Assembly: GCA_021613535.1 (NCBI GenBank)
Contig: CP075497.1
Location: forward strand, 5,642,001-5,706,000
Source of the DNA: Adineta vaga
Taxonomy: Eukaryota; Animalia; Rotifera
Direction of reading: 5' to 3'
DNA length: 64,000 bases
Part shown: positions 12,984-62,348 of the stretch, in pieces
How the letters are laid out: each line of letters opens with the position of its first letter
Numbering within the stretch: position 1 is the first letter of the stretch
Position numbers and translations under genes: made by a program
Notes under the pieces: model-generated
The model's database searches: none
What the model was told of the DNA's origin: nothing
The model's input: only the letters and a program-made list of their open reading frames with translations

Positions 12984-13300
12984 TTAACTTTCACAAGCCT
13001 TACAATCACATGATTTAATGTGTATGTATTTGGCGTCTACGTGGTATCGAGGAGTACCAATAGCTTCACAACTCATCGTTATGATTTCTGTATATACTTC
13101 GCTTGGTGAACAACACGTACAAGTTGAATTACCAAATTTATAAACTTCATTGCCTATTTCTAGCATATTACTTGCACCCGACTCACAACCACCAGTACAT
13201 CGTTCACGTGAAACTTCAGTGATAGATATACATTTACCATCGTTGACTTTAATACGTTCAGCAGGTAATATTTCAAGACGACACGTACTTTCGACTAAAA
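12984..13300 (-). other. C-terminal cystine knot (CTCK) domain exon of the giant gene
   Basis: C...C...RCTGGC...CTCC.P...C...IKSCDCKAC* spacing typical of mucin/VWF/SCO-spondin CTCK. Confidence 0.9.
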
Positions 13301-16300
13301 GACGAGAAAAATTCATAAATAATTAAACATGATTGATAAAGATTAGTACTTTTAGTCTTGTTACACATGCCACAACATTGGCCAGGTGAAGGAGGAATCC
13401 ATGTATAACGATAATTGGGATCTTGATTTTGTTTCAATAAGCATGTTTTTTCATTTTCTGAACATATAGTACCACATTCTAGTTTACCATCGTGACAAGT
13501 ACATATTTCACATGGATTATTTGGATTAGTAATAACGTATTGTGGCTAAATAATTTGTAAACTAGATATGAATTGACTAATTTTTTTTGATGAACTTACT
13601 GGTACAGTAATGGTTTCTGTTCCATTCTGTATATCACAATTTGTATGAGGAGTTGTAACCGAAGTAGTAGCTGGTGTTGTTGTCATTGTTGTGGTTGTAC
13701 CTTGAAAGATTACAAAAGAAAAACATAAACTCTTAACATTGTTTTATATTATTGTACTTACAAATTTCATTGCAATTCTCATACTGAATTTCTTGAAGAA
13801 CAGTTCTATTACTGTTATCGGTTATATAACCCACTTCTGAGTCTGATGATGGCATACACGTTTGTCCAGCACATTGAGGTTCTGGTGATGCACATAAATG
13901 AGATCGATGACGAGTTCCTTTACATGTTTGACTACATGGGGTCCAATCTGCCCATAAAGTCCATTGACCATCAATGTTTACACCATCATTTGGTTGAGTT
14001 TCAAGTATACCTGTTTCAAGACAGATACTAAATAAAATAGAGAAATTAGGAGACATAAGATATGGGTTTTTGTTGATTATGAATATTCAAATATATTTAC
14101 GTTTTGTTGCATGGTGTTTCTTCAATAACTTCACCGACTTTGTACGTAATTATAGTACCATTTTGAGTTGTCATTGTACAAACAACTGTACAATTTGAAG
14201 AACATGTTCGTCTGTCTTCTTCTGTACGTTCATCGAGACAATTTTGTCCAGAATATGTTCGGAAACGACTTTGTGTACCATTACAAGTATCCGAACAATC
14301 GGTAAACGGTCCCCATTGCGACCATTCACATACAGTACAATTCTGATTTTCCTTTATTATGCAGCCATCCTTACATGTATATCTTGTACATGGATCTCGA
14401 ATATTACTTTCACCATTAATTAAAACAGTACCATCAGCTGGTAGATGACACACACATTCTTTACGATCAACACATTGACCATTAGGTGCCATAACTTGAG
14501 GTGGTGGACATATGCAACCTTGTATACATCTATCTGGTCTTCGACATTGATTATCACATGTTAATGAGTCACATGTTCGATCACAATCATTAGCGCATTC
14601 ATGATATATTTTACCATCAGTACAATTTGGTTCTGAAAAGAATAAAAATACATTTAGAAAGATTAGTTAATTTCTCTTCAATCTATCGGTTCAAATACTT
14701 ACCACATGAATGTGCATTGCATACTTGCGTTTGATAAGAGTTTCCTTTACATGGTTCGCCTTTACATGATGGTGATGGATTCGTACAAGAACGATTTCGT
14801 TGTTGCACTCCAGAATCACATGATTTTGAACAATTTGACCAATTTGACCATTCCGTATATTTTCCATCGACAGGACAACATTGTGTGTTACATGGCCGTG
14901 TCTCATATAGATTTATTCTTGTACAATTTTCATTTCCTGATGTTTTAAATTGGCGTGTACGTTTCTGTTGACCAGTACCACACTTCTCTGAACATGATGA
15001 CCATTGACACCAATCAGTTACGTCACATGTACAATTAAAACCTTCGATACATGGACATGGATCACCTACACATGGTAATGTTTCGATTATTTGTCGCGCA
15101 CATAGTGGATTAAATAGATATGTTGGAATCAAATTTTGTGAACGTATTCGAACTCCTGTTTGAGCACATGATGCATTACATTCACTCCATTCAGACCACG
15201 ATTGATATTTGCAATCATCTTTGAATAAAAATTTTCGTATATTAAATCAACACATAGTTTTATTTGATTTACCTAAACATGGAACTTTTTCCTTGGTTAT
15301 TCCGTTCGGTTTACATGCAAGTTGCGTGCAATTATCAATAAAAATTGACGCATTTCGGTCAATCTTATCATCAATTTTTATCGATATATCTGTTACTAAT
15401 AATGTTGTTGAATTGATCAAATATCCAACAAAATCTATAGGGAAAAAGCAAAGAATTTTATTTTTCTTGTATTGAATTAAAATAAATTAAACTAAACTTA
15501 CCGTCATTTGGTGGATCTCTTTCTAACTGTTCACGATACTTATCACGTGTTATCGTACATTCTTCACAAGCTATGTTCAAACATTGTTCTGTTTCATATG
15601 TTGGTTCTTGACATGAACCACTGATAACTGACCGTGATCGATATCGAGTTCGAACATATTGACATTCAGGTGAACATTTTGACCAATCTTCCCATTGACC
15701 AAGAACACAACCAGGTGTCGTACCAGTTAAGAGAGTTGTTGATGATAATGACGTAACTAAAGGAAAAAAAGAAGCTTTTTATGAATGGTTCTCGTTGATA
15801 TCGATCATATACCAGTAGTAATATTAGCCGATGGTGTGCCTGATGAACCAATACTAGCAGATACTACTGTTGTTGAACTATATTCTAAACGATTACAAAA
15901 CATATATTGAAATACAAGTATTTTCATCTTCAAATTCGCTTACGTTCAGGAACACATCCGATCACAACAAGAGTAATATTTGTCGGTAGCTTTTCATCAG
16001 TTGTACTGATTATTTTAATTTCAAACTTTCCAATCGGTATCTGAGGTACAAGTTGTTGAACCTAAATCAAGTATGAATGATAATAAAATAGTAATATATC
16101 TTGAAAATCATACTATCGTAACGCCACGAATTGTTTCTACAATCCAAGCTTCACCATTGTCTTTTCGAACGACTTCCCCATTAGTATCATAGAATTGCAC
16201 TTGAATTTGATTCACATTACTTTCTCCATTCTTATTTGGAACAGATATGGAAATAATTTGTGATACGATAACCGCGTTCACTTCAACCAAAAACGTAGGT

Positions 16301-19300
16301 TGAGCAGAACCACTAGATGTGAAGCCTGGCGCATCTGAACGAATTGATGACATTGGTATTGAAACATCCGTTTCAATTTGTTTGATCGCCAGTATCGCAT
16401 TATCGTAATACATAACATCACTATTATAACATGGAGCACCACTTGTTCCTGAAAAAGAATATTAGCAAATGCATAAAAACATTCAAACAACCAACCAAAC
16501 AAATCCACTCCAACTACACACTCTATCACGCTCATCAACTGCGCTTCAGAAACTAGAAATTCTGCGAGGACATTTAAAATAAACCATATCATTCCAATAC
16601 AACGCAACTCTCTGTACGAAGTCACCTATTTCACCATTAAGACATCAGTACACAAACTAAACATAAGCAATCACTCAGACAAAAAATTCTGCTTCACAGT
16701 ACGCCACCACACAAAACCGAGCATTCAAATAACAGTCTTGTATACATCAGAAACAAAAAAAATATACATACCACTGCTAGAACTGGATGCCGGTCATACC
16801 AGAACTTAGAGTAACAAAAGTAGTACTACCACTCAAAGCCGTATACATTGTACTTTCCGTCAATGATGTCAACGATGTTAGCCCAGTACCTTGTGTAGAC
16901 GCTGCAGTATACGATGTTGCCGGAGTGCCTTGTGTTCCTGGCGTTGAAGCTCCGGTGTATGGTGTTGAGAGTGTTGAAGCTCCCGTATATGGTGTTGCTG
17001 GTGCTCCAGACGTTGAAGCACCTGTGTATGGTGTTGATGGTGTTGAAGCACCTGTGTATGGAGTTCCTGGAGTTGAAGCACCGGTATATGGTGTTGATGG
17101 TGTTGAAGCACCGGTGTATGGTGTTCCTGGTGTTGTGGCACCGGTATATGGTGTTGATGGTGTTGAAGCTCCTGTGTATGGTGTGCCTGGAGTTGAAGCA
17201 CCGGTGTATGGTGTTGATGGTGTTGAAGCTCCTGTATATGGAGTTCCTGGTGTTGATGGTGTAGAAGCACCTGTGTATGGAGTTCCTGGAGTTGTAGCAC
17301 CGGTATATGGAGTTGATGGTGTTGAAGCACCGGTATATGCTGTTGATGGTGTTGAAGCTCCTGTGTATGGTGTTGTTGGTGTTGAAGCACCTGTGTATGG
17401 TGTTCCTGGAGTTGTAGCACCGGTATATGGTGTTCCTGGAGTTGAAGCACCGGTATATGGTGTTGATGGTGTTGAAGCACCTGTATATGGAGTTCCGGGA
17501 GTTGAAGCACCGGTATATGGTGTTGATGGTGTTGAAGCTCCTGTATATGGTGTGCCTGGAGTTGAAGCACCGGTGTATGGTGTACCTGGAGTTGAAGCAC
17601 CTGTGTACGGTGTTGCTGGTGCTCCAGACGTTGAAGCACCTGTGTATGGTGTTGATGGTGTTGAAGCACCTGTGTATGGAGTTCCTGGTGTTGTAGCACC
17701 GGTGTATGGTGTGCCTGGAGTTGAAGCACCGGTGTATGGGGTTCCTGGTGTTGTGGCACCGGTATATGGTGTTGAGGGTGTTGAAGCACCGGTGTATGGT
17801 GTGCCTGGTGTTGTAGCACCGGTATATGGTGTTGAGGGTGTTGAAGCACCGGTATATGGAGTTCCTGGTGTTGATGGTGTTGAAGCGCCCGTGTATGGAG
17901 TTCCTGGTGTTGTAGCACCGGTATATGGTGTTGAGGGTGTTGAAGCTCCTGTATATGGTGTGCCTGGAGTTGAAGCACCGGTGTATGGTGTTCCTGGTGT
18001 TGTGGCACCGGTATATGGAGTTGATGGTGTTGAAGCTCCTGTGTATGGTGTGCCTGGAGTTGAAGCACCGGTGTATGGTGTTCCTGGTGTTGATGGTGTA
18101 GAAGCACCTGTGTATGGAGTTCCTGGAGTTGAAGCACCGGTATATGGTGTTGATGGTGTTGAAGCACCTGTGTATGGAGTTCCTGGTGTTGTGGCACCGG
18201 TATATGGAGTTGATGGTGTTGAAGCTCCCGTATATGGTGTTGCTGGTGCTCCAGACGTTGAAGCACCTGTGTATGGTGTTGATGGTGTTGAAGCACCTGT
18301 GTATGGAGTTCCTGGTGTTGTAGCACCGGTGTATGGTGTGCCTGGAGTTGAAGCACCGGTGTATGGGGTTCCTGGTGTTGTGGCACCGGTATATGGTGTT
18401 GAGGGTGTTGAAGCTCCTGTATATGGTGTGCCTGGAGTTGAAGCTCCTGTGTATGGTGTTCCTGGTGTTGAGGCACCGGTGTATGGTGTTGCTGGTGTTG
18501 AAGCTCCTGTGTATGGTGTTCCTGGAGTTGAGGCACCGGTGTATGGTGTTGCTGGTGTTGAAGCTCCTGTGTATGGTGTTCCTGGAGTTGAGGCACCGGT
18601 GTATGGTGTTGCTGGTGTTGAAGCTCCTGTGTATGGTGTGCCTGGAGTTGAAGCACCGGTGTATGGTGTTGATGGTGTTGAAGCTCCTGTATATGGTGTT
18701 CCTGGTGTTGTGGCACCGGTATATGGTGTTGATGGTGTTGAAGCACCTGTATATGGTGTGCCTGGAGTTGAAGCACCGGTGTATGGTGTTGATGGTGTTG
18801 AAGCTCCTGTATATGGTGTTCCTGGTGTTGTGGCACCGGTATATGGTGTTGATGGTGTTGAAGCACCTGTATATGGTGTGCCTGGAGTTGAAGCACCGGT
18901 GTATGGTGTGCCTGGTGTTGTAGCTCCGGTATATGGAGTTGATGGTGTTGAAGCTCCTGTGTATGGAGTTCCTGGTGTTGTAGCACCGGTATATGGTGTT
19001 GAGGGTGTTGAAGCTCCTGTATATGGTGTGCCTGGAGTTGAAGCACCGGTGTATGGTGTTCCTGGTGTTGTGGCACCGGTATATGGAGTTGATGGTGTTG
19101 AAGCTCCTGTGTATGGTGTGCCTGGAGTTGAAGCACCGGTGTATGGTGTTGATGGTGTTGAAGCTCCTGTATATGGTGTTCCTGGTGTTGTGGCACCGGT
19201 ATATGGTGTTGATGGTGTTGAAGCTCCTGTGTATGGTGTGCCTGGAGTTGAAGCACCGGTGTATGGTGTTGATGGTGTTGAAGCTCCTGTATATGGAGTT

Positions 19301-22300
19301 CCTGGTGTTGATGGTGTAGAAGCACCTGTGTATGGAGTTCCTGGAGTTGTAGCACCGGTATATGGAGTTGATGGTGTTGAAGCACCGGTATATGCTGTTG
19401 ATGGTGTTGAAGCTCCTGTGTATGGTGTTGTTGGTGTTGAAGCACCTGTGTATGGTGTTCCTGGAGTTGTAGCACCGGTATATGGTGTTCCTGGAGTTGA
19501 AGCACCGGTATATGGTGTTGATGGTGTTGAAGCACCTGTATATGGAGTTCCGGGAGTTGAAGCACCGGTATATGGTGTTGATGGTGTTGAAGCTCCTGTA
19601 TATGGTGTGCCTGGAGTTGAAGCACCGGTGTATGGTGTTGATGGTGTTGAAGCTCCTGTATATGGTGTTCCTGGTGTTGTGGCACCGGTATATGGAGTTG
19701 ATGGTGTTGAAGCTCCTGTGTATGGTGTGCCTGGAGTTGAAGCACCGGTGTATGGTGTTGATGGTGTTGAAGCTCCTGTATATGGTGTTGAGGGTGTTGA
19801 AGCACCTGTGTATGGTGTTCCTGGTGTTGATGGTGTAGAAGCACCTGTGTATGGAGTTCCTGGAGTTGTAGCACCGGTATATGGAGTTGATGGTGTTGAA
19901 GCACCGGTATATGCTGTTGATGGTGTTGAAGCTCCTGTGTATGGTGTTGTTGGTGTTGAAGCACCTGTGTATGGTGTTCCTGGAGTTGTAGCACCGGTAT
20001 ATGGTGTTCCTGGAGTTGAAGCACCGGTATATGGTGTTGATGGTGTTGAAGCACCTGTATATGGAGTTCCGGGAGTTGAAGCACCGGTATATGGTGTTGA
20101 TGGTGTTGAAGCTCCTGTATATGGTGTGCCTGGAGTTGAAGCACCGGTGTATGGTGTGCCTGGTGTTGTAGCTCCGGTATATGGAGTTGAGGGTGTTGAA
20201 GCTCCTGTGTATGGTGTTCCTGGTGTTGTGGCACCGGTATATGGTGTTGAGGGTGTTGAAGCTCCTGTATATGGTGTGCCTGGAGTTGAAGCACCGGTGT
20301 ATGGTGTGCCTGGTGTTGTAGCTCCGGTATATGGAGTTGAGGGTGTTGAAGCTCCTGTGTATGGTGTGCCTGGTGTTGTGGCACCGGTATATGGTGTTCC
20401 TGGTGTTGAAGCACCGGTATATGGTGTTGAGGGTGTTGAAGCACCTGTGTATGGAGTTCCTGGTGTTGAAGCACCGGTATAGGGTGTTGATGGTGTTGAA
20501 GCACCTGTGTATGGAGTTCCTGGAGTTGAAGCACCGGTATATGGTGTTGAGGGTGTTGAAGCACCCGTGTATGGTGTGCCAGGAGTTGTAGCACCGGTAT
20601 ATGGAGTTGAGGGTGTTGAAGCGCCCGTGTATGGTGTGCCAGGAGTTGTAGCACCGGTATATGGTGTTGAGGGTGTTGAAGCTCCTGTATATGGTGTGCC
20701 TGGAGTTGAAGCACCGGTGTATGGTGTTCCTGGAGTTGTAGCACCGGTATATGGAGTTGATGGTGTTGAAGCGCCCGTGTATGGTGTGCCAGGAGTTGTA
20801 GCACCGGTATATGGTGTTGATGGTGTTGAAGCTCCTGTGTATGGTGTTCCTGGAGTTGAAGCACCGGTGTATGGTGTTGCTGGTGTTGAAGCTCCTGTGT
20901 ATGGTGTTCCTGGTGTTGAGGCACCGGTGTATGGTGTTGATGGTGTTGAAGCTCCTGTGTATGGTGTGCCTGGAGTTGAAGCACCGGTGTATGGTGTTCC
21001 TGGTGTTGATGGTGTAGAAGCACCTGTGTATGGAGTTCCTGGAGTTGTAGCACCGGTATATGGAGTTGATGGTGTTGAAGCGCCCGTGTATGGTGTGCCA
21101 GGATTTGTAGCACCGGTATATGGTGTTGAGGGTGTTGAAGCTCCTGTATATGGTGTGCCTGGAGTTGAAGCACCGGTGTATGGTGTTCCTGGTGTTGTGG
21201 CACCGGTATATGGAGTTGATGGTGTTGAAGCTCCTGTGTATGGTGTGCCTGGAGTTGAAGCACCGGTGTATGGTGTTCCTGGTGTTGATGGTGTAGAAGC
21301 ACCTGTGTATGGAGTTCCTGGAGTTGTAGCACCGGTATATGGAGTTGATGGTGTTGAAGCTCCTGTGTATGGTGTGCCTGGAGTTGAAGCACCGGTGTAT
21401 GGTGTTCCTGGTGTTGATGGTGTAGAAGCACCTGTGTATGGAGTTCCTGGAGTTGTAGCACCGGTATATGGAGTTGATGGTGTTGAAGCGCCCGTGTATG
21501 GTGTGCCAGGAGTTGTAGCACCGGTATATGGAGTTGATGGTGTTGAAGCTCCTGTGTATGGTGTGCCTGGAGTTGAAGCACCGGTGTATGGTGTTCCTGG
21601 TGTTGAAGCACCGGTATATGGTGTTGAGGGTGTTGAAGCACCTGTGTATGGAGTTCCTGGTGTTGAAGCACCGGTATAGGGTGTTGATGGTGTTGAAGCA
21701 CCTGTGTATGGAGTTCCTGGAGTTGAAGCACCGGTATATGGTGTTGAGGGTGTTGAAGCACCGGTATATGGTGTTGAGGGTGTTGAAGCACCTGTATATG
21801 GTGTGCCTGGAGTTGAAGCACCGGTGTATGGTGTTCCTGGAGTTGTAGCACCGGTATATGGAGTTGATGGTGTTGAAGCTCCTGTGTATGGTGTGCCTGG
21901 AGTTGAAGCACCGGTGTATGGTGTTCCTGGTGTTGTGGCACCGGTATAGGGTGTTGATGGTGTTGAAGCACCTGTGTATGGAGTTCCTGGAGTTGAAGCA
22001 CCGGTATATGGTGTTGAGGGTGTTGAAGCACCTGTGTATGGAGTTCCTGGTGTTGAAGCACCGGTATAGGGTGTTGATGGTGTTGAAGCACCTGTGTATG
22101 GTGTTCCTGGAGTTGAAGCACCGGTGTATGGTGTTGCTGGTGTTGAAGCACCTGTGTATGGTGTTCCTGGTGTTGAAGCACCGGTGTATGGTGTTGCTGG
22201 TGTTGAAGCACCTGTGTATGGTGTTCCTGGTGTTGAAGCACCGGTGTATGGTGTTGCTGGTGTTGAAGCACCTGTGTATGGTGTGCCTGGAGTTGAAGCA

Positions 22301-25300
22301 CCGGTGTATGGTGTTGATGGTGTTGAAGCTCCGGTATATGGTGTTGAGGGTGTTGAAGCACCTGTGTATGGAGTTCCTGGTGTTGAAGCACCGGTATAGG
22401 GTGTTGATGGTGTTGAAGCACCTGTGTATGGAGTTCCTGGAGTTGAAGCACCGGTATATGGTGTTGAGGGTGTTGAAGCACCGGTATATGGTGTTGAGGG
22501 TGTTGAAGCACCTGTATATGGTGTGCCTGGAGTTGAAGCACCGGTGTATGGTGTGCCTGGTGTTGTAGCTCCGGTATATGGAGTTGATGGTGTTGAAGCT
22601 CCTGTATATGGTGTTCCTGGTGTTGTGGCACCGGTATATGGTGTTCCTGGTGTTGTGGCACCGGTATATGGTGTTCCTGGTGTTGATGGTGTAGAAGCAC
22701 CTGTGTATGGAGTTCCTGGAGTTGTAGCACCGGTATATGGAGTTGATGGTGTTGAAGCGCCCGTGTATGGTGTGCCAGGAGTTGTAGCACCGGTATATGG
22801 TGTTGAGGGTGTTGAAGCTCCTGTATATGGTGTTCCTGGTGTTGTGGCACCGGTATATGGTGTTGATGGTGTTGAAGCACCTGTATATGGTGTGCCTGGA
22901 GTTGAAGCACCGGTGTATGGTGTGCCTGGTGTTGTAGCTCCGGTATATGGAGTTGATGGTGTTGAAGCTCCTGTGTATGGAGTTCCTGGTGTTGTAGCAC
23001 CGGTATATGGTGTTGATGGTGTTGAAGCACCGGTATATGCTGTTGATGGTGTTGAAGCTCCTGTGTATGGTGTTGATGGTGTTGAAGCACCTGTATATGG
23101 AGTTCCTGGTGTTGTGGCACCGGTATATGGAGTTGATGGTGTTGAAGCTCCTGTGTATGGAGTTCCTGGTGTTGTAGCACCGGTATATGGTGTTGATGGT
23201 GTTGAAGCACCTGTGTAGGGTGTTCCGGGAGTTGAGGCACCTGTGTATGGTTTTTCTGTAGTTGACGCTGTTGTTATTCCAGTGGACGGTGTGGTAGGTC
23301 CGGTTGGTCCTCCAGTCGGTCCAGTAGGGGATGCTGTACCTGCCGTTGGTCCACCTGTTGACTGTGTGTATGATGTACCACTTGATGGTGTCGCTACAGT
23401 TGTCAACGTAGTTATTGCGATTGAAGGTGTTGATCCAGAGATAGTTGGTGGAACTGTTCCAGTCGTCACAACTGTTGTAGCCGTCGATGGTGTGTAACAA
23501 GCGATGATGGATACAGTCACATCAGTTGGTGCTGCACCATTGGGTGTGTTAAAGATGATTGTGACTGTGCTACCCTCTGGCAGAGGTTGATTGTAGGTGA
23601 CTGCCACTGTTGGTGTACCAGATGGAGATGTTTGACTGAAGAGAACTGTACCATCGGGTTGTTTCACAATGACAGTGATACTGTCGACATTGGTTGTTGG
23701 ACTTGGTACAGAAACTGAACTGAGAATGGGTGTTGTGCCTGATGTGAATGGAATAATGACAGATGCATTATTATTGATGAAATTAACACCGGGAGATTCG
23801 GGATTGAGTTCTGAAACGGATGTAGACCCAGGTGCTCCGATGAATATTGCCTGATTGATGTATTGTGGACTGGTCATGCCTATAATGGAATTAGGTGATT
23901 GCGATGATGAAGTAGAGAGAAAACATACCATCAATAAGTGGACAAATGACAGTTGTAGTGATGGGTGTTCCTGGAGCAAGTGTTGATTGGATTGATGCTT
24001 GCGTTGATCCTGTTACACCTAAATGATATCGAAGTTGATTGCTAAACTTTTTATTTTTCATATTATAAATTTTGCGAAAATACAGGACTACATATTACGC
24101 TTTATGGCAGGTATATTTTAAGAAACTTCATAACGATCGAACTATCAATGTGAAGATGACGGAAACATAAAGAATGAACTAAAAGATTTTAACATTCAGT
24201 CATATTGAACAAATTTTTTACCGACATAGAATGTTCGTAACTCTTCAAGATCATTAAATACTGTCAATCAGACTGACATACATGGGTAACTTTGAGCAAG
24301 CTCTATCGGTGTAACCATAAACGAAGACAAAACTATAAGCATCATATTATTTAATTTCGCAAGCGTGAAGGACACCAGATCACTCTTGCAGGGTTCTTGG
24401 AGAGATTCGCATAGAAACAAATACTTCTACTAACGAAATATGTTGACACTTCAAACGTTCACCACACGACTCAGTCAATTAGAGACACACGGCGGGTCCA
24501 TAACAGAGAACCTACATAGGTACATATTTCCAAAACAATCGATATTTTCAGGAAGACTACGAAAATAAGCGTTTTTTTATATCGAATATTGATGTGAAGC
24601 GCGAGTGGATGCACTTTATATACTAAAACATGCAGTATCACAAATCGCAGGTATGTGAATGCGGTGATAGTCACTTTCTTACCAGTACTTCCAGGATAAG
24701 CTGTTGAACCTGTAGCGGTAGTTCCTTGTGTCACTACAGTTGTCAACGTAGTTATTGTGATTGAAGGCGTTGATCCAGAGATAGATGGTGGAACTGTTCC
24801 TGTCGTTACAACGGTTGTAGCCGTCGATGGTGCGTAACAAGCGATAATGGATACAGTCACATCAGTTGGTGCTGCACCATTGGGCGTGTTAAAGATGATT
24901 GTGACTGTGCTACCCTCTGGCAGAGGTTGATTATAAGTGACTGCAACTGTTGGTGTACCAGATGGAGATGTTTGATTGAAGAGAACTGTACCATCGGGTT
25001 GTTTCACAATGACAGTGATACTGTCGACATTGGTTGTCGGACTTGGTACAGAAACTGAACTGAGAATGGGTGTTGTGCCTGATGTGAATGGAATAATGAC
25101 AGATGCATTATTATTGATGAAATTAACACCAGGAGATTCAGGATTGAGTTCCGAAACGGTTGTAGACCCGGGTGCTCCGATGAATATTGCCTGATTGATG
25201 TATTGTGGATTGGTCATGCCTATAATGGAATGAGGTGAGTGATGATGAAGTAGAGAGAAAACATACCATCAATAAGTGGACAAATGACAGTTGTAGTGGT

Positions 25301-52300: not shown

Positions 52301-55300
52301 CTTCAAGAGAAGATCAAGACGGTTATTTTTTAAGAATAATGAACACAAAAAAATAAATCCTATCGATTTTACCTGACGTTGAAGGAACTGATGGTACCGT
52401 TGATGAAATTGTTTCATTGGTAATTCCTTTTGAAGATCCTGTATCTAAAAATCAACTTATTTAAAGGTTTTACTGATACTTTATAAACTTATATTACTTG
52501 TGGTTTGCATAGTAACTGTTGAAGAACCTGCCAAGCGAAATTCAGTATATATAAGCATATTATTCTATCAAATCAATTTGTTTGTAATAACTTACCTGAA
52601 GTTAGACTAGTTCCTTGTGATATTGAAGAGGCTGGTGTTGATGAAAAACTTGTTGTTGATGAAAAACTTGTGGTTGATGAATAAGGATAAAAACAAGCCA
52701 TAATAGATAATGTTACATGATGTGATGGCTTTTTATCATATGTATTAAAAGAGATCAATAATGTTGAACCTGGCGGTAATGGAGTTTTTGGAAAACCAGT
52801 AACAACTGTGTCATTAACTGGTGATTGAAGTGTAATAGAACTCGAACCATACGATAGAATAATGAGTACTGTGACCTGATTTACGTTAGTAATTGTTTTA
52901 TTTCCAATAGCTAATGTGACAATTATAGGTGTAATTGATGGAGCAAATTCGATTTCAATTGTAGCATCATTTGAGGCAAATATAACACCGTCACCATTCG
53001 GACGAATATTCGGTGATTGTGGCGTATGACTACCATATATTGTATAATTCAATACATTCTGTGGCTGATCCATACCTTCTTCCAATGAGCACAAATGTGG
53101 TGTACCTATGATGATAAATAACAGAAAAAAATCATCAGTCTTTTCATCGAATATAGTTGAAAAGTACCTGTTGATGTTGCATGACTAATAGTGCTTGGAA
53201 CTGAAGTTAATAAATGATAAATATTAATTATCAGACTAATGTTTTTTTTTAAATTTTAAAAACATACTTGATAGAGTAGTTTCTTCGGGACCTTCTGTGT
53301 GAACAATTTCTGTTTCTTTTTCGTGAGCTGAATAGATATATACGCATACATATAACTATCATAAAATCATTCGAAGATTTTAACTTACTAGTTTTTGTAC
53401 TGCCTAAAGATGTAAATCCTGATGTAGTCGCTAAAAAAATTAAAGAAGAAATTGATTTTTTTTAAAATTGTTTGTTTCTTCTTACAACTGATAAATCGTT
53501 CAGTTGTTATCTGTGATGCTGTAACTAGAAAATAAGATAATATTCTCTCATCATAATAAATTTGAAATATTCTTTTAGAAAAAAAAACCTGTTGATATCG
53601 TCGTTGGTTGTCCACAGATATAAACAGCTAAACGAATATGATAACCTAAGTTAGAATTGTTCTTAGTTCTTGGCACAATTCTGATTTGTTTTGCTTTTAT
53701 TTGATAGAATTTCGTTTCTGAATTTTCTTGATCCTAGATGAAACATAAAACGTATATATATATATATATATATGAAAATTTAAAGACAAACTAAAACGAT
53801 TTCTTTACTTACACTTGCTAGCACATATTCATCACCATTTGATGTTGTATATGAAATACTATAGGATTTTACATTCGAATCCGATAGAATAATCACAGAA
53901 TAAATTGTTTGCTCCAATGGAAAACTGATGGTTATCGCTCCACCATCGACCATTTCAAGACCTTGATCATTTTCTTTGACGAGATTTATAACATCTTTGT
54001 TATTGTAGGAAACTTCCACACCATATGTACTGGTTGCATTTGCAGCAAGAACATTTTCAGGAATGCAAACATATGGGGTGGCTAGAAAGATAGTTTATCT
54101 TGGAACAAAATGTTTTTCAAATAATCAATAATTATTACTTGGTGTTGAAGAAACAGTCGGTGCTGTTCCTGATGTTGTAGAAAAAACTGTGGATCCTAAT
54201 AGAATGAATACGGTTAAATATAAAAAAGAACATCAATTCATCTTGCGTCTCACCCTCTGCACAACCCAATAGTTCTAGTTGCGCTGACAAAACAGTATTA
54301 GTCAATGTTCGATAAAAAGTAAACCGTATAACAAGCACATCAATAATTGGTTGTACAAAGTACACGGTAGTTATTGCCGTTGATGATGATTCTGTTCGTC
54401 GAATAGGCTGAAAACAGAACGATAATTTAATAAAAATAATCAGAAAAGTTAATACAAACATTTCCAGAATATTGAATATTTTTACTTGAAAGTGTATCAT
54501 ATTCAATATGAATTTCTGACACTGTACCACGTATTTCAAAACCAGTTAATGTTTTAGCATTATCTATCAATAAATGAATGTTTGTGAAAAACAAATCGAA
54601 TATGTTTTATTAAATATTTTACTTTGAGAAAAGCGAATTTCAACATTTGGTGTTGCATCATCACTATCAGCACTCCAAAAATTTGGATTATTCATACGAA
54701 TAGCATCCACGCCATCATTCTGGTACTTTTGTGACGAAACAGATATATCACTCGTAGGAATAAGTTGATTCTGTAAACCCATTTTATCATTACACCGATA
54801 TGAAGTAGCTAAAAAGAATTACATAACTCAATCAAACATTTCAACGATGAAAAGAGTCTTACTTTCTGATGAAGACATTGTTGAAGTTAAATATGCTAAA
54901 CAAAAGGAAAAATGTCCATTACAATCTTCCTCTCAACAAATACTTACATGTGGTAGTTGATGTTCCTTAAAAGAAGAAAAATAATCAACTTTTGCTTATT
55001 TTGATAATTGGAATTTATTTACCTGTACAACCCGTGATTTCTAAGGCTGTAATACTGATCGCCTCGTCTTTCGTATTAGAAATGGTCACTGTTAGTTGTG
55101 TTGTTGGTTGTGTCGATGGTGAAGTAATTATAATCGTATATTTTACAGATGTATCAGAAGTCGAAACAATATCACCCATTACTGGAGTATTGGATGGATT
55201 GGTACGAGCATAAAATACGGTCACCGGTTTTGTTGATGTCAAATGGATTTCCATAATTTGATACGGAGATGGAAAGAAAATATTGAATACAACGGTATTC

Positions 55301-58300
55301 TTTTTAATTTCCACCGGTTGTGATGTTGAGATTTCTGGATTTTTCGAAAAATTTTGTATTTGAGGTGATGAGACAGAATATATCAATGATGAAGTAAGTG
55401 TAAATGCCTGATACGTTGATGATGTGTTGGTACAGACTGGAAATGAAAATAATAAATTTTCATTTGATATACTATAGTCAATTCAAGAAATCAAACCTTC
55501 CGGAGTTGTTGTTGTTGTTGAGGGTGTGAGTGTTGTTGTATAATTACAAAGATTGTCATCTTCATCCGTTTTATCCATACAATCAGCATAATTATCACAA
55601 ACACGTGAATTATTGACACATTTACCAAGTGGATTACTCTGAGTAATATCACAGATAAATTGTGTGCATGGAGGTAGAGTACCTTGTTAAAAAGAAATAA
55701 AGAAAAATTATGCATGAAAAATATTGAAATATCATACTTTGGATCTGACATCTAGGATAATTTGGAAACAATTGTGGATTTTCATCAGAACCATCATCAC
55801 AATCTTTTTCACCATCACAAAGTTCTTCTTCGGGAATACAATGGTAGACATTTGATACCAAACATAGCTTAGTCGTACAGACTGATGTAGTAGTTCCTGG
55901 ACTTGTTGATGCTAAAAGTATCAATGAAAATGTTTTAATTAGATACTTATCCTATTCATACATACTTGAGAGAATGGTTGTTGATGTTGCACTTGTCGTT
56001 GGAAAAGGTGTTGTTGATGTTGCACTTGTCGTTGGAAAAAGTGTTGTTGATGTTGCACTTGTCGTTGGAAAAGGTGTTGTTGATTTATCTTTGCAAAAAA
56101 AGATGATATATCGATTATAAAAAAATAGAATAAAGAAACACAGATGACTTACTGCAGTTTGGATGTGTTTCATCATCATTTTTCGGACAATTCGGTACTC
56201 CATCACATAATTTTGTCATATTAATACAGCCTCCTCCATTACATGTATATTCATTTATATTACAAAGACAATTCTTTTCATCTGAACCATCTCTACATTG
56301 TTCTATACCGTCACAAACGTTAGCCACAGGAATGCAGTCACATATGGTTGTACATGCAAATTTATTATCTGTGCACATACAAGTACAATTTTTTTCATCA
56401 CTACCATCACCACAATCATCGTGAGTGTCACAACGTTGTTCTATAGGTAAACATTTACTCATTGGATTATCATTACAACGGAACGCACGACCACTTTCCG
56501 TATCACATTCTGTATGATTACACTGATGTTCATCAGAATTGTCAAAGACACCTTTTTGCGTACAATCAACATGACCATCACATACCCAAGATCGGTCTAT
56601 GCATTTGCCATTGTCACATCGAAAACCATAACATGGATAAGTTTCATTACAGTTGAATTCATCACTTCCATCACGACAATTCGGTAAATTATCACAACGT
56701 TTCGTAGAATTAACACATTGACCATTATCACAAATAAAATCATTAGGTGTACATCCTATAAAACAATGATAATGATTATTTTTTTCAAGACAAAAGAGCC
56801 AATAATAAAGATACGTACCACAATTGAATTCATCGGATTCATCATCACAATCACTTATTTTATCACAAACATGTGATAGAGGAATACATACACCCGTTGA
56901 ATTACATGTAAATTCATTTCGAGAACATTTTGGTACACAATTGGGTAATGGAACACAAAGGAATGTACCATTCGTACATGTACTAGATTCAAAAATAAAG
57001 ATGACTAGAGTCGAAAGAAAATTTGTTAAATTTACCATTGATCACAGTTACGAATAAGTTTTGTTCCAACTGAATAAGGTATATTGTTATCAATACATGG
57101 GCATGCATCTGGTTCAACACATGTACCCGTTTCATCCATAACTTGACCTTCTGGACAAAAACAACCTTCATGACAACCTGAGTCTACACAACTATAATCA
57201 TCTTTTAGATAAATATCTCGACACGTAGATTGACAGATAGCTCCGCAAGCCATATAAATTTTTCCATATTCACATTGCATTGCTACATGTTAAACATAGC
57301 TATTTTGAATTGAAAATTCTTTTGCAAAAAAAGAAAACTTACGGCATCTATCCTGTGTACGCCATTTCACTGGTACTTCGATAGATTGACATTTCTCACC
57401 AAATGTTGAAAGTGATGTACATAAACACTCGCAATCACCACCAGTATCACAACTAGAAAGAAAAATGACATTAGAATGTTCATTATAAATGACAAGACTA
57501 TTTCATACTGGCAAGCATCATAAAGACAATTACGATAATAATCTTGTACAACAGTTGCATCAAGTTTTTCAATACATGGTAAAAATGGATTGGTTTCTGA
57601 TCTATCAATAATCTAGTAATAACATAAAATATTATATAATTATTTTGAAAACTTTCATAGATATGTCAAAGATGACAACTTACCAAAGAACATTCTTTTG
57701 TTGCCCAATTTCTACGTGCTTCAAAGCCAGCACATGGTGCAGAAGGATCTACAACCGGTGATGGTCCAGTTACACATGTTTGTTCAACTTTCCATGATTC
57801 AGCCATATCAGTAATCGTACCTGGAACACCGCTGGCAGTACTAAAAGATATTTTACAGATGTTAATCTATTTTTTTCGAAATGAAGAATGAATTTTTTAC
57901 TTAAGATCATCAGTTGGATCATTATCTGAATCACCACAGAGACCAGCAGTTTGTCCTTTCATATTATAAGGAATAGTGACGTAGATACGTGTTTTTTCAT
58001 CCCATTTGACAATTATATCCGAGCAATTGACAAAAACGAATAAACCTGATTTCATCAATGATACATCACCAAAAACACGATGTCCTAAATCTAGATCTTT
58101 GACTTCCACATCACCGACAATAGGATCTCGACCACGCGTCAAGGAAACTGTTAAACCTTTACATTTGATGAAGATATTTTTCGCACATGTGACACCTGAT
58201 GTACCACATTGTACATTTTCAGTAATTACACGAAATGATAGATCTTTCGTTTGTGTTAAGACATATTTGCAATTGCCTTGATATGAATAATAATTACCAT

Positions 58301-61300
58301 CATATGTTACATAATGTGGATCACCAGATGCCGAACATGTTGCACTACATTTCTGTTCAGTACATATCCATGAACCAGCAGAACATTTACAATCTTTACA
58401 ACCTGATTTAACCGATTGTTCCGGACCATATGAACGGCCAGCATATCGACATGGACAAGCTTTCACATCCACACAAGTTTTTAACTAATGAAGAATTGAT
58501 AGAAAAAATAAACAATATACTTTTCTTTTTTCCTATTCTATATATTTAACTTACATCTTGACTCAGAACTTTCCCATTAGGACATGTACATCCTTCATAG
58601 GTAAGTCCACAATCTCGCCATGTTTTCATATTATCACATGTTTTCACACATGCTGTAGCATTGTATGAATAAACTTGTGTTTCTGGACAAGTTGTTGCTG
58701 CTTCACATGATTGAGAACCACAATTCCATTTTCCATTCGTACATGTACTAAACGAATATTTCAATAAATCATAATAGAAAAAGAAACAATTCTTTCTTAC
58801 CAATTTCCACATGATCTTGCGACTGTTTGGCCTGCTTTAATATAAGTATTTGTTTCAAAATCATAACACGCACAACCACTTTGTGGGACACATTGTGGTT
58901 TGTCTGATACTGAGACATCGAGGTAGGATTGACTTGGACATGAACAACCAGCCATACATTCTCGTTCATAACATGATTGATTAACTACTGAAATGTCATG
59001 ACATGTTTGAGAGCATTTTGGTGCACAATCACTATATGCAGCTCCACCACTACATTGTCCGTATTGTGCATCTTGACATTTAAGTTTAAGATTAGCATCA
59101 CTCATCCAATTAATTGTTATATTCGCTAAACGACATTCACGTGCATATGCAGCAGCAGCTGCGCAAACAAATGTATTTTGAAAATGTGAATTCTTATCAG
59201 AACATAAATCATATTGGCAACTTTGAAAAAATGGAGATGGATCAATTTTTGATGCGCATGCTTGAAATAAAGATGATTTCAAAATTGAACAAGTACTCAT
59301 GGCTCCTGATTGAAGCTAAAATCAAAGAAATACAATTGAATTTTCATATGTGGAAGAATTATTTCATCAGTTCTATACATTGCCGTTAATTGTACATGGA
59401 TCATCTTGATTTGGTGTTGTACATACTGTACTTGTTTTATATTCATCGATGAATGATTGAGTATTTGTATCGACAATTTGTGTACGTATTGAGAAATCAT
59501 TATCACGATTGAAATCAAATGTGCCACATAAACCACGTGTATTATTCACATGTGTAGGATCTAAACGAATATAAACTCGAATACCATCGAATTGAATTTG
59601 AGCACCACGACCTAAACATAAAATCAAATCAATTTTTTAGTTTCATAAAAAAGGACTATATGAGTAAAAATTGCATACAAGTAATCGTATGAAACACCGT
59701 TGTTTCACGTGTCACAGTGACTTCAACATTTTTATATGGTAAAATTGCTCGAATTTCACCATTAATTTGAACATTTTTATCTTTAATGTAAACATATGTT
59801 TGATTACATTTGACAGTTAAATCTTTATAATTTGATGTCGATGTATAAGAATTTGTCATTGCTACATATAGACCAATTGATGGATTGATTTCCTATAGAA
59901 AGATAAAAGAAGACGAATGCTTTTCGTTTAGATCTTCTCTGAACAATGTATAAAAACAAATGATCTTTTACTTCAACTAGAATATATTCACAATTGCCTC
60001 GAACAGAATAGAACTTTCCATCAAATGTTTGAATATGATTTGTTCCAAGTACTGAGCATGTTCTTGAACAATATTTCTTCGTACAAGACCAAGTACCAGT
60101 AACGCATTTACTGTTGAATAAAAAAATAAAATAATCATCAGATTTTCGAAAACAATTATTTTCTTATCAATTCATACCATTCATTACAATCAACTTTAAT
60201 TGAAGCTCCTGCTAGATAATATTTTCCTTCTGCACGACAAGTACATTGTTCAACTTTTGTACATGTTCCATTACGACCAATATCGATGACTGAGCCACTT
60301 GGACATACACAACCTGGTGAACAATCTTTTTTACAATCGACAGAATCTGTAAATTGTTGTCGATAATTTTGACATGTCGATGGACATGATGTTGCACATT
60401 CTGTATAGATTTTTGCATTTTCACAAGATTTTGGACAACGATCAGTTGTTCGCCAATCAATATGCATATAATTATCCTCACAATCACGTCCTACTGCTTC
60501 GAATGAAGAACAAACTGCTTGCTCTTGAGCATTTATACCGTACTTAGCAGCGACACAATGATCACGTTTACATGTTTCATATATTGGTGTAGTATTCAAA
60601 ACACGGTTGCATATTTTAAATGAATCATATGGACTAATAATTGGTCTACAAGCGACTTCAGCAGCATCAATTAAATCTGCAGTACATGGATCTGTAGGTA
60701 CCGGACTTGTAGGACACTAAATCAAGTTAATAGTAACGAAATGTATGATAATTTCATAGTACTTACACCACTATCAGTACGCCATTCATTAGCAAAATGT
60801 GTTGCTGATGCACTGAGTGAACCGTCGGGTAATTGAAGATCATCTGCAAGATTTTTATCAATATAAAATCTAAGAAATCAAATAAAACAAATATTTTCTT
60901 ACCATCACGATTGTTTGTATATGTTCCGCAAAGACCAGTGACTTGTTTCATATAGGTTTGTTCAATTGTAACAGCAACTGTCATACCATCATCCCATTTG
61001 AGACGAACACCATCCGAATAACGTAAATAGGTATAATCTCCAGAACGACGTTCAATTGTCAATGCTAAAAGGAAACAAATATTTCTTTTTCTATTTGATT
61101 TTTGTTATTTTCTCTCTAACACTTACGTCCATCAACATATCCTTGATTATCATTGAGTGCAACATTATTCACGATAACTTTTCTTCCTGTTGCAGTGATA
61201 ATATATCCACCAAATGAAATACTTAGCGACTTTTTACATGTTGTCCATTGATCACAATTGACATTTTGAACAACAACTGTCCAACTACTTGTACCGGATA

Positions 61301-62348
61301 ATTTATATTGACATCTATATAAATATATTTATAAATGTAAAATAGATTATTTCATTTAAATAAATCAATCATTGAATTATGTGACACTTACGATCCTTGG
61401 AAATTATACGTAAATCCATCGAATGTTCGAAAATGATCACGACCCCATAGAAGACATGTAGCATAGGTGAGTGTGCGCTTAATTTGTGCAGTAGCATTCG
61501 CAATTTCTTCATTGGTAGCATTACATAATGAGCACGTACCATCTGTAGATCCTATTGCAACACCAGCTAGATTTTCACAACAATAACTAGCAGTGACTGT
61601 TCCATTGCTAATACGTGATGGAACATTACAACTAGATGTTCGATAACATAGAACAAGACGTGGATCATCTGTTAACAGCACATTCATTTTTGTATACAGA
61701 AAAGAAATATGAAATCAAACTTACTTTGCTGATATTGACAACCTTCACCAGCATAGTCATTATTGCAAAAGCATTGATCAGGTTTGATACATTGTCCATT
61801 TTTACAAGGAATTGTACAAATAGCTACATTACAGGATTCACCTGTCCATCCTGCACAACAAGCATCTTTTGATACTTGACTAAAATAAAAAGTATTTGAT
61901 TTTCGTAAAAGTTCCATGATTACAGAACATAATTTACCGTTGATATGGACATGAAGCATTTGCTGCTGATTGACTTTTGATATAACGTATAACTTCATCA
62001 GCATCTTTTAAACCTTGTACAGTTCGAAGAGTCTATAAATATTTTTACTTCGACAAATTTTCTGTTTTCACGCAAAAAGAAACTTACATTGAAATCAATT
62101 CGCCAGATACCAGCTGGTTTTTCATACTCAGCCATAATATTGAATGTTGATCCATCTGGACATGTATTATTCTTCGTTTCTGTAACTGTTGTTGTACATA
62201 TATTTGTTCCGCTTATTTGAGCAGTAACACTAGAAGATGAATGACCAAATTATAAAATGAATTTCCTATGAGATTATTCAACTTACAGAAAATTCGCAAG
62301 ATGAATTGAGAAGAGAAGAGCACTGAGCAACGACGAGTAAGAAAACAT
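12984..62348 (-). CDS. Giant secreted SCO-spondin/gel-forming-mucin-like modular protein (single multi-exon gene, very roughly 10,000 aa)
   Basis: ATG at 62348 with signal peptide MFSYSSLLSALLFSIHLANFLVTA; continuous chain of minus-strand exons with compatible splice phases where checked; no internal signal peptide seen; ends in a cystine knot with TAA at 12984-12986 and AATAAA at 12943-12948. One frameshift at ~47128. Confidence 0.8.
13350..15760 (-). other. TSP1 repeats with TIL/VWC-like Cys-rich modules (giant gene C-terminal region)
   Basis: Several WxxWxxCSxxC...RxRxC motifs (WCQWSSCSEKCGTGQQKRTR, WSNWSNCSKSCDSGVQQRNRSC, WSQWGPFTDCSDTC, WADWTPCSQTC) plus a TIL-like CANDCDRTC...GCICP. 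Confidence 0.9.
16960..23240 (-). repeat. Coding minisatellite: ~210 x 30 nt encoding TPYTGA(S/T)TP(G/S/A), inside a 7080-nt exon (16800-23879)
   Basis: Directly visible 30-nt period with synonymous variation; occasional 39-nt variants (TPSTPG, TSGAPA). Copy number estimated as length/30. Confidence 0.97.
32374..33132. mobile_element. Degenerate TIR (MITE/foldback-like) insertion in an intron
   Basis: Left end tgatggaaaatgaccgaaagggaaaatg...aaaaggaaaaatgtggaaagaaaaaag is an imperfect inverted copy of the right end ctttttcatttctacatttttcttttcg...catttcccgtttcatcattttccatc; segment absent from paralogous short introns. Confidence 0.6.
35457..35661 (+). mobile_element. Solo LTR (205 bp) with 5-bp target site duplication
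   Basis: Begins TGTAACGATAA, ends TTGTCGTTACA (10/11 inverted match, TG...CA); flanked both sides by GTATA (35452-35456, 35662-35666); internal TATATAAA and AATAAA in the expected order. Confidence 0.85.
37967..38764. mobile_element. Probable old TA-targeting DNA transposon remnant
   Basis: Interrupts the paralogous intron motif tgtata|aNtgagtg at a TA; ends gagtgattt.../...aaattactg are weak inverted repeats; no transposase ORF. Confidence 0.4.
41633..42576. mobile_element. Probable TA-flanked degenerate TIR element containing an internal ~165-bp foldback
   Basis: Splits the motif cagtgat|agtagaa seen intact near 48812; TA on both sides; ends tactgtatgaaag...accaaacagaaaagattt and aaatcgtcttttggtt...ctttttaaagtg are imperfect inverted repeats. 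Confidence 0.45.
49929..50879 (-). other. Choice-of-anchor A / ice-binding-like adhesin domain exon (second copy, 951 nt, phase 1-1)
   Basis: YNVVTRADFSSTSDVNSRTLICGNL, FAIFNV, ILINVYG, LWNFPEAITI, GAVLAPYASL...NIDGAVAVNSI...GEIH: recognised from memory as the bacterial choice-of-anchor A pattern; not search-confirmed. Confidence 0.78.
51209..52150 (-). other. Choice-of-anchor A / ice-binding-like adhesin domain exon (first copy, 942 nt, phase 1-1)
   Basis: YNVITRESL...RTIVCGSL, FAIFNV, VINVY, VWNFHNAQQI, GAILAPSASI...IDGTVAVKSL; clear paralogue of the 49929-50879 exon. Confidence 0.75.
52600..55440 (-). other. Four divergent discoidin (F5/8 type C)-like domains separated by Ser/Thr micro-exons
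   Basis: CNDKMGLQNQLIPTSDISVSS...FWSA...AQLELLGC is a recognisable FA58C; neighbours share the Cys...hydrophobic-x-GC/AC bracket (ITALEITGC, IRLAVYIC, VTLSIMAC). Confidence 0.65.
55500..56935 (-). other. Eight LDL-receptor class A repeats
   Basis: C..F.C..G.C.....CD...DC.D.SDE..C repeats: six in 56155-56935, two more at 55745-55880 and 55545-55670. Confidence 0.92.
55975..56082 (-). repeat. 3 x 33-nt coding repeat (STT(P/L)FPTTSAT) between LDLa clusters
   Basis: gttgttgatgttgcacttgtcgttggaaaa(g/a)gt repeated three times. Confidence 0.9.
57035..61465 (-). other. Three VWD-C8-TIL assemblies (D1-D2-D'-D3-like)
   Basis: CLLWGRDHFRTFDG, CSVLGTNHIQTFDG, CSASGDPHYVTYDG; GLCG motifs; C8 (CQYDLC...CAAAAAYAREC; CLYDAC..DTGGDCECLC) and TIL modules. 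Confidence 0.93.
61500..62348 (-). other. Signal peptide, EMI-like, EGF and TB-like N-terminal modules
   Basis: CCAGWTGESCNVAICTIPCKNGQCIKPDQCFCNNDYAGEGCQY, followed by CYRTSSC...TASYCC...GVAIG...CSLC. Confidence 0.65.

Follow-up and report, generated by a model that had tools for sequence, protein, structure and literature searches.

Gel-forming mucins (MUC2, MUC5AC and MUC5B) share with von Willebrand factor (VWF) a head of VWD-C8-TIL assemblies in the order D1-D2-D'D3 and a cystine-knot (CTCK) tail, and the mucins carry a central tandem repeat rich in Pro, Thr and Ser (PTS). SCO-spondin is a second secreted giant, in which an EMI-like region, three VWD/C8/TIL assemblies, a cluster of LDLa repeats, a discoidin-like (FA58C) part, a TSP1/TIL series and a CTCK domain follow one another; about 25 TSP1 repeats interspersed with TIL domains make up most of the protein. 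For Rotimer, an exudate biopolymer of rotifers, the predicted main component is an SCO-spondin that is specific to rotifers and has VWD and LDLa domains, and the fibrils are likened to Reissner's fibre (PMC12154537). A third system comes from diatoms. The choice-of-anchor A domain (anchor-A; PF20597, also pAdhesive_15), which in bacteria and diatoms is associated with attachment to surfaces, occurs in diatoms in PTS-rich adhesive trail proteins (Trailins), and the bdelloid rotifers Rotaria, Adineta and Didymodactylos are reported to have acquired the diatom type-2 form of it (10.1101/2023.03.06.531300). Here, we describe a gene of the bdelloid Adineta vaga that combines features of all of these systems. 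It lies on the minus strand of a 64,000-nucleotide (nt) stretch (the window; contig CP075497.1 of assembly GCA_021613535.1, or C6, positions 5642001-5706000), spans approximately 49.4 kb and is divided into about 100 exons. Its predicted product, a secreted glycoprotein of approximately 10,500 residues, is probably a main component of a sticky matrix that the animal secretes.

The occurrence of anchor-A domains in bdelloids and that of an SCO-spondin-like rotifer exudate are already published, and the general idea is not new. A literature search found no description of the combined architecture. The fold of the 20-copy cassette described below, the four modules that precede the anchor-A domains, a one-base deletion in cassette 3, two further loci that keep the module order and a smaller paralogue are new.

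The gene runs from an ATG at position 62348 to a stop codon at position 12984 (Table 1). Its splice model was obtained by dynamic programming with a codon table that includes the repeats and with splice matrices trained on 14 joints seen in RNA. The model contains 103 exons and a coding sequence of 31,548 nt; 83 of the 102 introns are in phase 1 and the median intron length is 61 nt. All 14 training joints are recovered, as are five that were held out, including an 18-nt micro-exon. A first run, retrained on its own output, gave spurious micro-exons and was replaced by the version with the repeat-aware codon table. Eight small exons that the model places within long cassette introns are doubtful and are listed as such in Table 1.

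Pfam, similarity and fold searches were all run exon by exon, and stop-free pieces of the minus strand were scanned against Pfam. A first-pass annotation, made from the sequence alone, had proposed one chain from a signal peptide to a cystine knot by way of three VWD domains, eight LDLa repeats, two anchor-A domains and TSP1/TIL repeats. This order was confirmed on the minus strand by the Pfam matches and the splice model, and all of the named domains are matched in Pfam. No membrane anchor was found in the protein, which has a signal peptide. The three VWD-C8-TIL assemblies matched in Pfam follow one another in the D1-D2-D'D3 layout. The VWD3 exon has its best solved matches in MUC5AC (residues 830-1019), MUC5B (824-1011), VWF (820-1007) and MUC2 (794-982), with E values of about 1e-36 for single stretches of the mucin and VWF D'D3 regions; the match to FCGBP is also strong. 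At the opposite end, the last exon scores 24.7 bits against Cys_knot (cut-off 24) and 30.3 bits against DAN (cut-off 22), with weak matches to the CTCK domains of Norrin and VWF and the stop codon directly after. The polymerising ends of VWF type that had been postulated are both present. The EMI/EGF region expected at the N-terminus is less clear: the EGF-like part has a match, although below the cut-off, while the EMI-like part, which is split across three exons, has no Pfam match and was recognized by eye only, from the sequence CCAGWTGESC (motif CCxGWxGxxC) in the splice-model protein. VWD3 opens with a GDPH motif (approximately 58314-58325, minus strand), which in some mucin and FCGBP VWD domains is an autocatalytic Asp-Pro cleavage site; VWD1 lacks it and opens with GRDH.

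To assess the continuity of the chain, three RNA runs from two studies and one DNA run were placed on positions 49600-55599, a single 6-kb stretch. In the RNA contigs, CT..AC joints, which read GT..AG on the minus strand, number more than 15; the DNA run shows none. One RNA contig of 3407 nt covers the first LDLa exon (approximately 56978), all of the LDLa repeats and the modules M1-M4. Adjoining contigs, with breaks only inside exons, extend the chain across both anchor-A exons, each of which is flanked by RNA joints on both sides, to exon 49847-49752. The microbial-type domains and the LDLa repeats are therefore joined by splicing, in one RNA chain that runs from these repeats through the second anchor-A domain. 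The proposal of a single exon chain is borne out by RNA from approximately 56978 to approximately 49757, which is about 7 kb of the 49 kb, and the suggested RNA check across 52300-49500 returned GT..AG joints as far as exon 49847-49752 in all three runs; for the remainder, the splice model predicts that a single transcript would span the gene, with the frame of cassette 3 broken as described below. Length variants of PTS linkers that keep the frame are also seen among the RNA contigs (positions 52655 and 55505): one run lacks 18 nt and two runs lack 3 nt. These variants look like allelic differences in repeat number.

Both anchor-A domains are full length and score far above the Pfam cut-off of 23.8 bits (98.9 and 102.7 bits, respectively), and they are 57% identical to each other. 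The genome holds four copies: these two and one in each of two genes on contig C1 (at 11.79 Mb and 3.80-3.82 Mb), which keep a simpler, Trailin-like layout. As in the diatom Trailins, PF20597 stands beside PTS-rich regions in a secreted protein. Unlike in the Trailins, the domains of the giant gene form two phase 1-1 exons within an animal VWD/CTCK scaffold.

The largest part of the gene is an array of cassettes, of which motif counts give exactly 20, the number that had been proposed. Every cassette consists of two phase-1 exons: exon A, which encodes a PTS linker and the first Cys, is followed after an intron of about 58 nt by exon B, which is of a 501-nt or a 537-nt type and encodes a jelly roll and a further PTS linker. 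Introns of 277-1443 nt separate the cassettes. These long introns contain repeated blocks (45697-45903 versus 30276-30482, and 43473-43622 versus 26560-26703), so that the array must have grown by multi-cassette duplications and not only by single ones.

An AlphaFold2 model of the cassette, built on an alignment of 30 family members, has a mean confidence (pLDDT) of 92.4 and a predicted template-modelling score (pTM) of 0.87. The model superposes well on jelly rolls of known structure (VIA-align; Z of 9-11 and r.m.s.d. of about 3 Å for 117-127 of 131 residues, with 64 chains at Z of at least 8). The matches comprise neuropilin b1, discoidin I, the factor V/VIII C domains, CBM32, F-type lectins and DOC domains, and the top matches in Foldseek and the ESM Atlas belong to the same galactose-binding domain-like jelly-roll superfamily. 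The family alignment shows a conserved pair of Cys residues, one at each end of the domain as in FA58C. By its predicted fold, the cassette is a discoidin or galactose-binding-like jelly roll. It differs from FA58C, CBM32 and DOC domains in having no Pfam match and few relatives: a search of 1.84 billion representative proteins found only 33, and all of the named sources are bdelloid. A link to an LPXTG 'adhesive domain' protein of Carnobacterium (phmmer E of 8.5e-4) was given a probability of only 16% by hhalign, and we therefore make no claim of a bacterial origin.

The first-pass annotation had placed one discoidin-like module before the anchor-A domains and had listed the cassette separately. 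Instead, four Cys-bounded modules (M1-M4), with PTS linkers between them, separate the LDLa repeats from the first anchor-A domain, and the term 'discoidin-like' proved to be right at the level of the fold. The distinction between this module and the cassette did not hold: the cassette is itself a discoidin-like module, amplified 20-fold, of the same kind as M4 and the C-terminal module M5. M4 was found with an E of 2e-48 in a genome search with the cassette profile and has an orthologue subgroup of its own. For M5, the orthologue P0064 of Rotaria socialis (57% identity) is spliced as in the splice model and matches the cassette family with a probability of 96.8% and an E of 2e-10 in hhalign. 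M4 and M5 thus belong to the cassette family by sequence and, by homology, would have the same fold. The first exon of M2 can be aligned, in register, with the beginning of the discoidin domain b1 of neuropilin-1 (E of 0.002). M1 and M3 gave no significant match to the cassette profile and can be assigned to the discoidin/galactose-binding-like modules only tentatively; for M1, the features of a language model give a weak indication of F5/8 type C, and the single-sequence AlphaFold2 model (pLDDT of 53) was too poor for a fold search. The only Pfam matches in the scans of the cassette and of M1-M5, sub-threshold ones to DUF2808 and DUF3124, were rejected as chance.

The array of tyrosine-bearing decapeptides is also as had been proposed. 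It encodes 203 PYTGA units, a spacer of approximately 2,100 residues, within a 7080-nt exon (23879-16800) that is continuous with cassette 20. Its composition (32% Thr, 20% Pro, 15% Gly, 12% Ser, 11% Ala and 10% Tyr, with Thr, Ser and Pro making up 64%) provides the central PTS tandem repeat of a gel-forming mucin, and PTS linkers lie between all of the modules. Open frames on the plus strand across the array, such as 16787-20482, arise merely because the repeat is open in several frames.

Both repeats vary mainly at the third codon position. The cassettes are 95% identical in DNA sequence between copies, with 9, 10 and 58 variable sites at codon positions 1, 2 and 3, respectively, and with 2539 synonymous against 751 non-synonymous codon differences. 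In the decapeptide array the entropy at the three positions is 0.19, 0.11 and 0.74, and one decapeptide is encoded in up to 19 DNA versions. This bias shows that both repeats are maintained as protein, under purifying selection.

The order VWD-C8-TIL, anchor-A, cassettes is conserved, each time on a single strand, at two loci of another assembly. At the first of these (L020 and L001) the VWD3 exon is 71% identical to that of the window; at the second (L002) the intron interrupts the cassettes at the same position. At the first locus, a 5-kb repeat (L001:4272-9425) separates a discoidin-like region from the anchor-A domain. It is open in several frames and does not resemble the Tyr decapeptide, which suggests a rapid turnover of the low-complexity arrays in such genes. 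At a distance of 650 kb from the giant gene, a smaller paralogue encodes, in order, TIL-VWD-C8-TIL, a cassette-like jelly roll, a 2452-residue array exon rich in Gly, Ser, Thr, Pro and Gln (GSTPG/Q), a second cassette-like jelly roll and a CTCK domain. The basic design in bdelloids may thus be 'jelly roll, array, jelly roll' enclosed by VWD and CTCK parts, of which the giant gene would be the most elaborate member. The cassette family also exists in an intron-less, very recently amplified form: an uninterrupted 9-kb open reading frame of another assembly (P0022; L003:2236-11280) holds 15 identical units of cassette and PTS linker, 28% identical to the cassette of the window. In Rotaria and Didymodactylos, the relatives are deposited as short pieces ('unnamed protein product, partial'), in agreement with the earlier warning that automated annotation would fragment such genes.

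Table 1. Features of the giant gene, its neighbours and its relatives. Positions without a contig prefix refer to the window.
Feature	Position	Strand	Evidence or remarks
Exon 1, start codon and signal peptide	62287-62348	-	Hydrophobic 21-residue leader, then GTAAGT donor
EMI-like and EGF exons	61725-62229	-	Weak teneurin-EGF matches, E 3e-7, below curated cut-off
D1 assembly (VWD1 on four exons, C8-TIL)	60178-61668	-	VWD pieces; C8 2e-10; TIL 3e-9
D2 assembly (VWD2, C8-TIL, extra TIL)	58555-60110	-	VWD 9e-9 and 1e-7; C8 1e-16; two TIL
D'D3-like assembly (VWD3, C8, TIL)	57036-58484	-	VWD 1.9e-29; C8; TIL
Eight LDLa repeats	55497-56982	-	Ldl_recept_a 1e-47 (six stretches) and two single matches; inside 3407-nt RNA contig
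M1, Cys-bounded all-beta module	55023-55436	-	Exon confirmed by RNA; no Pfam match
M2, FA58C (discoidin)-like, three exons	54254-54808	-	Exons set by RNA joints; no Pfam match
M3, Cys-bounded module, two exons	53589-54081	-	Exons set by RNA joints; no significant similarity
M4, cassette-family galactose-binding-like domain	52596-53105	-	Exon confirmed by RNA; full-length alignment with cassette family, 33% identity
Anchor-A domain 1, single phase 1-1 exon	51209-52150	-	PF20597 6e-28, profile 5-250 of 254
Anchor-A domain 2, single phase 1-1 exon	49929-50879	-	PF20597 4e-29, profile 4-254 of 254
20 cassettes	23486-49653	-	Motif counts; splice sites read directly and modelled; all phase 1
1-nt deletion, cassette 3 exon B	47120-47140, near 47129	-	Single gap versus cassettes 2 and 4; stop at 47120-47122
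Tyr decapeptide array, PYTGA(S/T)TP(S/G)T	16932-23265	-	Tandem Repeats Finder, period 30 bp, 207.5 copies; translation open
M5, cassette-family domain, two exons	15944-16448	-	Array exon leaves by phase-1 donor near 16800 to phase-1 acceptor 16448 (splice model)
TSP1, three TSP1, TIL and Cys-rich stretch, TSP1	13762-15756	-	TSP_1/TSP1_spondin 1e-25 (three stretches) and single matches; TIL 1e-8
VWC-like exon and CTCK, TAA stop	12984-13545	-	Last exon; VWC weak, E 0.008
Doubtful exons 1-4 of 8	46927-46901, 46627-46466, 38558-38532, 33159-33076	-	Splice model
Doubtful exons 5-8 of 8	32900-32874, 30920-30801, 27234-27088, 24332-24282	-	Splice model
Neprilysin-like M13 peptidase	698-3257	+	Neighbouring gene
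MBOAT acyltransferase	4537-5686	-	Neighbouring gene
DUF229/sulfatase-like gene	9666-11868	+	Neighbouring gene; converges on 3' end of giant gene
Smaller paralogue (L017-L018)	C6:4991566-5002224	-	
Anchor-A gene, Trailin-like	C1:11786803-11788701	+	633-residue open frame: hydrophobic leader, anchor-A, PTS repeats
Anchor-A gene, Trailin-like	C1:3802869-3820293	+	About 17 kb of PTS arrays ending in anchor-A domain
Distant cassette-family cluster	C4:1085049-1116191	-	Open frames of about 1,000-1,950 residues in the three clusters; no VWD match nearby
Distant cassette-family cluster	C4:1672921-1674418	+	As above
Distant cassette-family cluster	C4:8228909		As above
Relative in another assembly (L020 and L001)	1.79-Mb contig	One strand	C8-TIL, VWD, C8-TIL, VWD3, TIL, 5-kb repeat, one anchor-A, at least eight cassettes
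Relative in another assembly (L002)	Second contig		VWD-C8-TIL-VWD, anchor-A, cassettes; same cassette intron position

We consider it probable that this protein is a main component of a sticky secreted matrix, for which the cement of the pedal glands and a particle-trapping exudate of the Rotimer type are the candidates that the architecture suggests. Given the D3 match and the homology of the CTCK domain with VWF and the gel-forming mucins, we propose dimerization through the knot and multimerization through the D assemblies: the CTCK domain would dimerize the chains tail to tail and the D1-D2-D'D3 head would join the dimers head to head into disulfide-bonded fibres or gels. Each chain would display about 25 jelly rolls (M1-M5 and the 20 cassettes) and the two anchor-A domains on glycosylated PTS linkers, and the decapeptide array would act as an O-glycosylatable spacer that, with one Tyr in every ten residues, could undergo oxidative cross-linking, as is the case for other structural proteins that contain tyrosine. 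Polymerization, ligand binding, tyrosine cross-linking, the tissue and the adhesive role are all predicted here by analogy with described systems. The giant protein resembles the adhesives of flatworms and sea stars in that long repeats accompany its VWD, lectin-like and TSP1 modules, and it resembles the mussel protein mfp-1 in having a tandem decapeptide with a conserved tyrosine (see also PMC8621496). It differs from these marine bioadhesives in that the repeats are unrelated in sequence and that the protein lacks a Lys-rich or DOPA-type context.

Several observations weigh against this reading. The CGLCG motifs of VWF D1 and D2 were searched for in the head and are absent. PF00754 (discoidin) did not match the cassette, M1, M2 exon 1, M3, M4 or M5 at E values up to 5. 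The junction between the VWD and LDLa parts, the 20 cassettes, the junction of the array with M5 and the 3' end rest on the splice model and not on RNA. A 1-nt deletion breaks the frame of cassette 3 in this assembly, so that the chain is strictly open only if splicing leaves this exon out or if the missing base reflects an error of assembly. The Rotimer work concerned monogonont rotifers (PMC12154537). The Rotimer peptide PNCRDGSDE, shared with R-SSPO/1, is present once in the giant protein; it lies near the generic LDLa consensus and is therefore weak evidence for a link. A second Rotimer peptide, DSSNDL, is absent from the giant protein.

A bolder form of the matrix reading is that the anchor-A domain was acquired horizontally, from diatoms or bacteria, and entered a polymerising animal mucin/SCO-spondin scaffold through exon shuffling, where a bdelloid-specific lectin-like cassette, amplified 20-fold, and a cross-linkable Tyr decapeptide spacer were added to it, so that the protein is now the load-bearing component of the temporary glue or exudate fibre of the bdelloid. 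We put this forward only tentatively, as a possibility that we hold to be rather doubtful.

Alternatively, the protein could serve as a mucin that protects or lubricates, for instance, the lining of the gut, the mastax, the integument or the coat of the egg, or it could belong to a desiccation-related matrix; the lectin-like modules would then bind microbes or the animal's own glycans and not substrates. The general architecture of a gel-forming mucin, the simpler relatives in the same genome and the expression of the gene in whole-animal RNA from two studies would all fit such a role. The giant protein departs from these mucins and from VWF in having no D4 assembly, no clear VWC series and no CGLCG motif, in the interposed LDLa, TSP1, anchor-A and jelly-roll modules, and in a repeat with an invariant tyrosine. 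The tie of anchor-A domains to surface adhesion in bacteria and diatoms, and a Tyr in every decapeptide, which is unusual for lubricating mucins, speak against a protective or lubricating role. Neither point is decisive, and we regard this role as unlikely.

A bdelloid orthologue of SCO-spondin that retains its ancestral role, forming a fibre from neural or glia-like secretory cells with the inserted modules as lineage-specific decoration, seems still harder to accept. The first-pass annotation had recognized the SCO-spondin order, and the layout VWD-LDLa-FA58C-TSP1-CTCK does hold from the VWD domains to the CTCK domain, behind an N-terminal region that is EMI-like by eye only, with three VWD domains and eight LDLa repeats and with the FA58C part based on weak sequence evidence together with the fold of the related cassette. 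The rotifer literature also names related proteins SCO-spondin (PMC12154537). The TSP1 series does not fit: the 3' part of the giant gene encodes five TSP1 repeats and one TIL, compared with about 25 TSP1 repeats in SCO-spondin. Further, approximately 7,700 of the approximately 10,500 residues belong to anchor-A domains, cassettes and the Tyr array, which lie between the discoidin-like and TSP1 parts and have no counterpart in SCO-spondin, and the strong matches of the D3 exon are to mucins, VWF and FCGBP, although an SCO-spondin structure does not exist for comparison.

The remaining alternative, that the locus is made up of at least two neighbouring genes of one orientation or is a partly decayed gene whose cassettes are no longer translated through, could appeal to the deletion in cassette 3 and to the limited span of the RNA continuity, but it is improbable in view of the single signal peptide and single stop-terminated tail, the cassette exons that are all phase 1-1 and contain no start codon, the intron that separates TIL3 from the first LDLa exon, which at 53 nt in the splice model leaves no room for an internal promoter, and the strong third-position bias of the cassettes and the array, which argues for translation; a single-base gap in a repeat of 95% identity is moreover a typical assembly error, and the exon can in any case be skipped in frame.

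If the giant protein is the matrix component that its architecture suggests, it provides a sequence-defined candidate for rotifer adhesive and exudate material, which has so far been known mainly from microscopy and indirect proteomics. The presence of a horizontally acquired adhesion domain as ordinary exons in a classical animal scaffold bears on how bdelloids domesticate foreign genes, and, should the load-bearing role be true, foreign DNA would contribute a working component to an animal bioadhesive. The cassette, a small and well folding domain of lectin-like type, is apparently confined to bdelloids as far as named sources go and should be easy to express and assay. The decapeptide array offers a new repeat for oxidative cross-linking assays and, like the cassette, is relevant to biomimetic adhesives. 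For annotation, the relatives in other bdelloids, filed as dozens of short fragments, serve as a warning.

The neighbours of the giant gene in the window are ordinary animal genes (Table 1). The flanking sequence has a GC content of 29-34%, and the genome comprises 100.8 Mb in six contigs.

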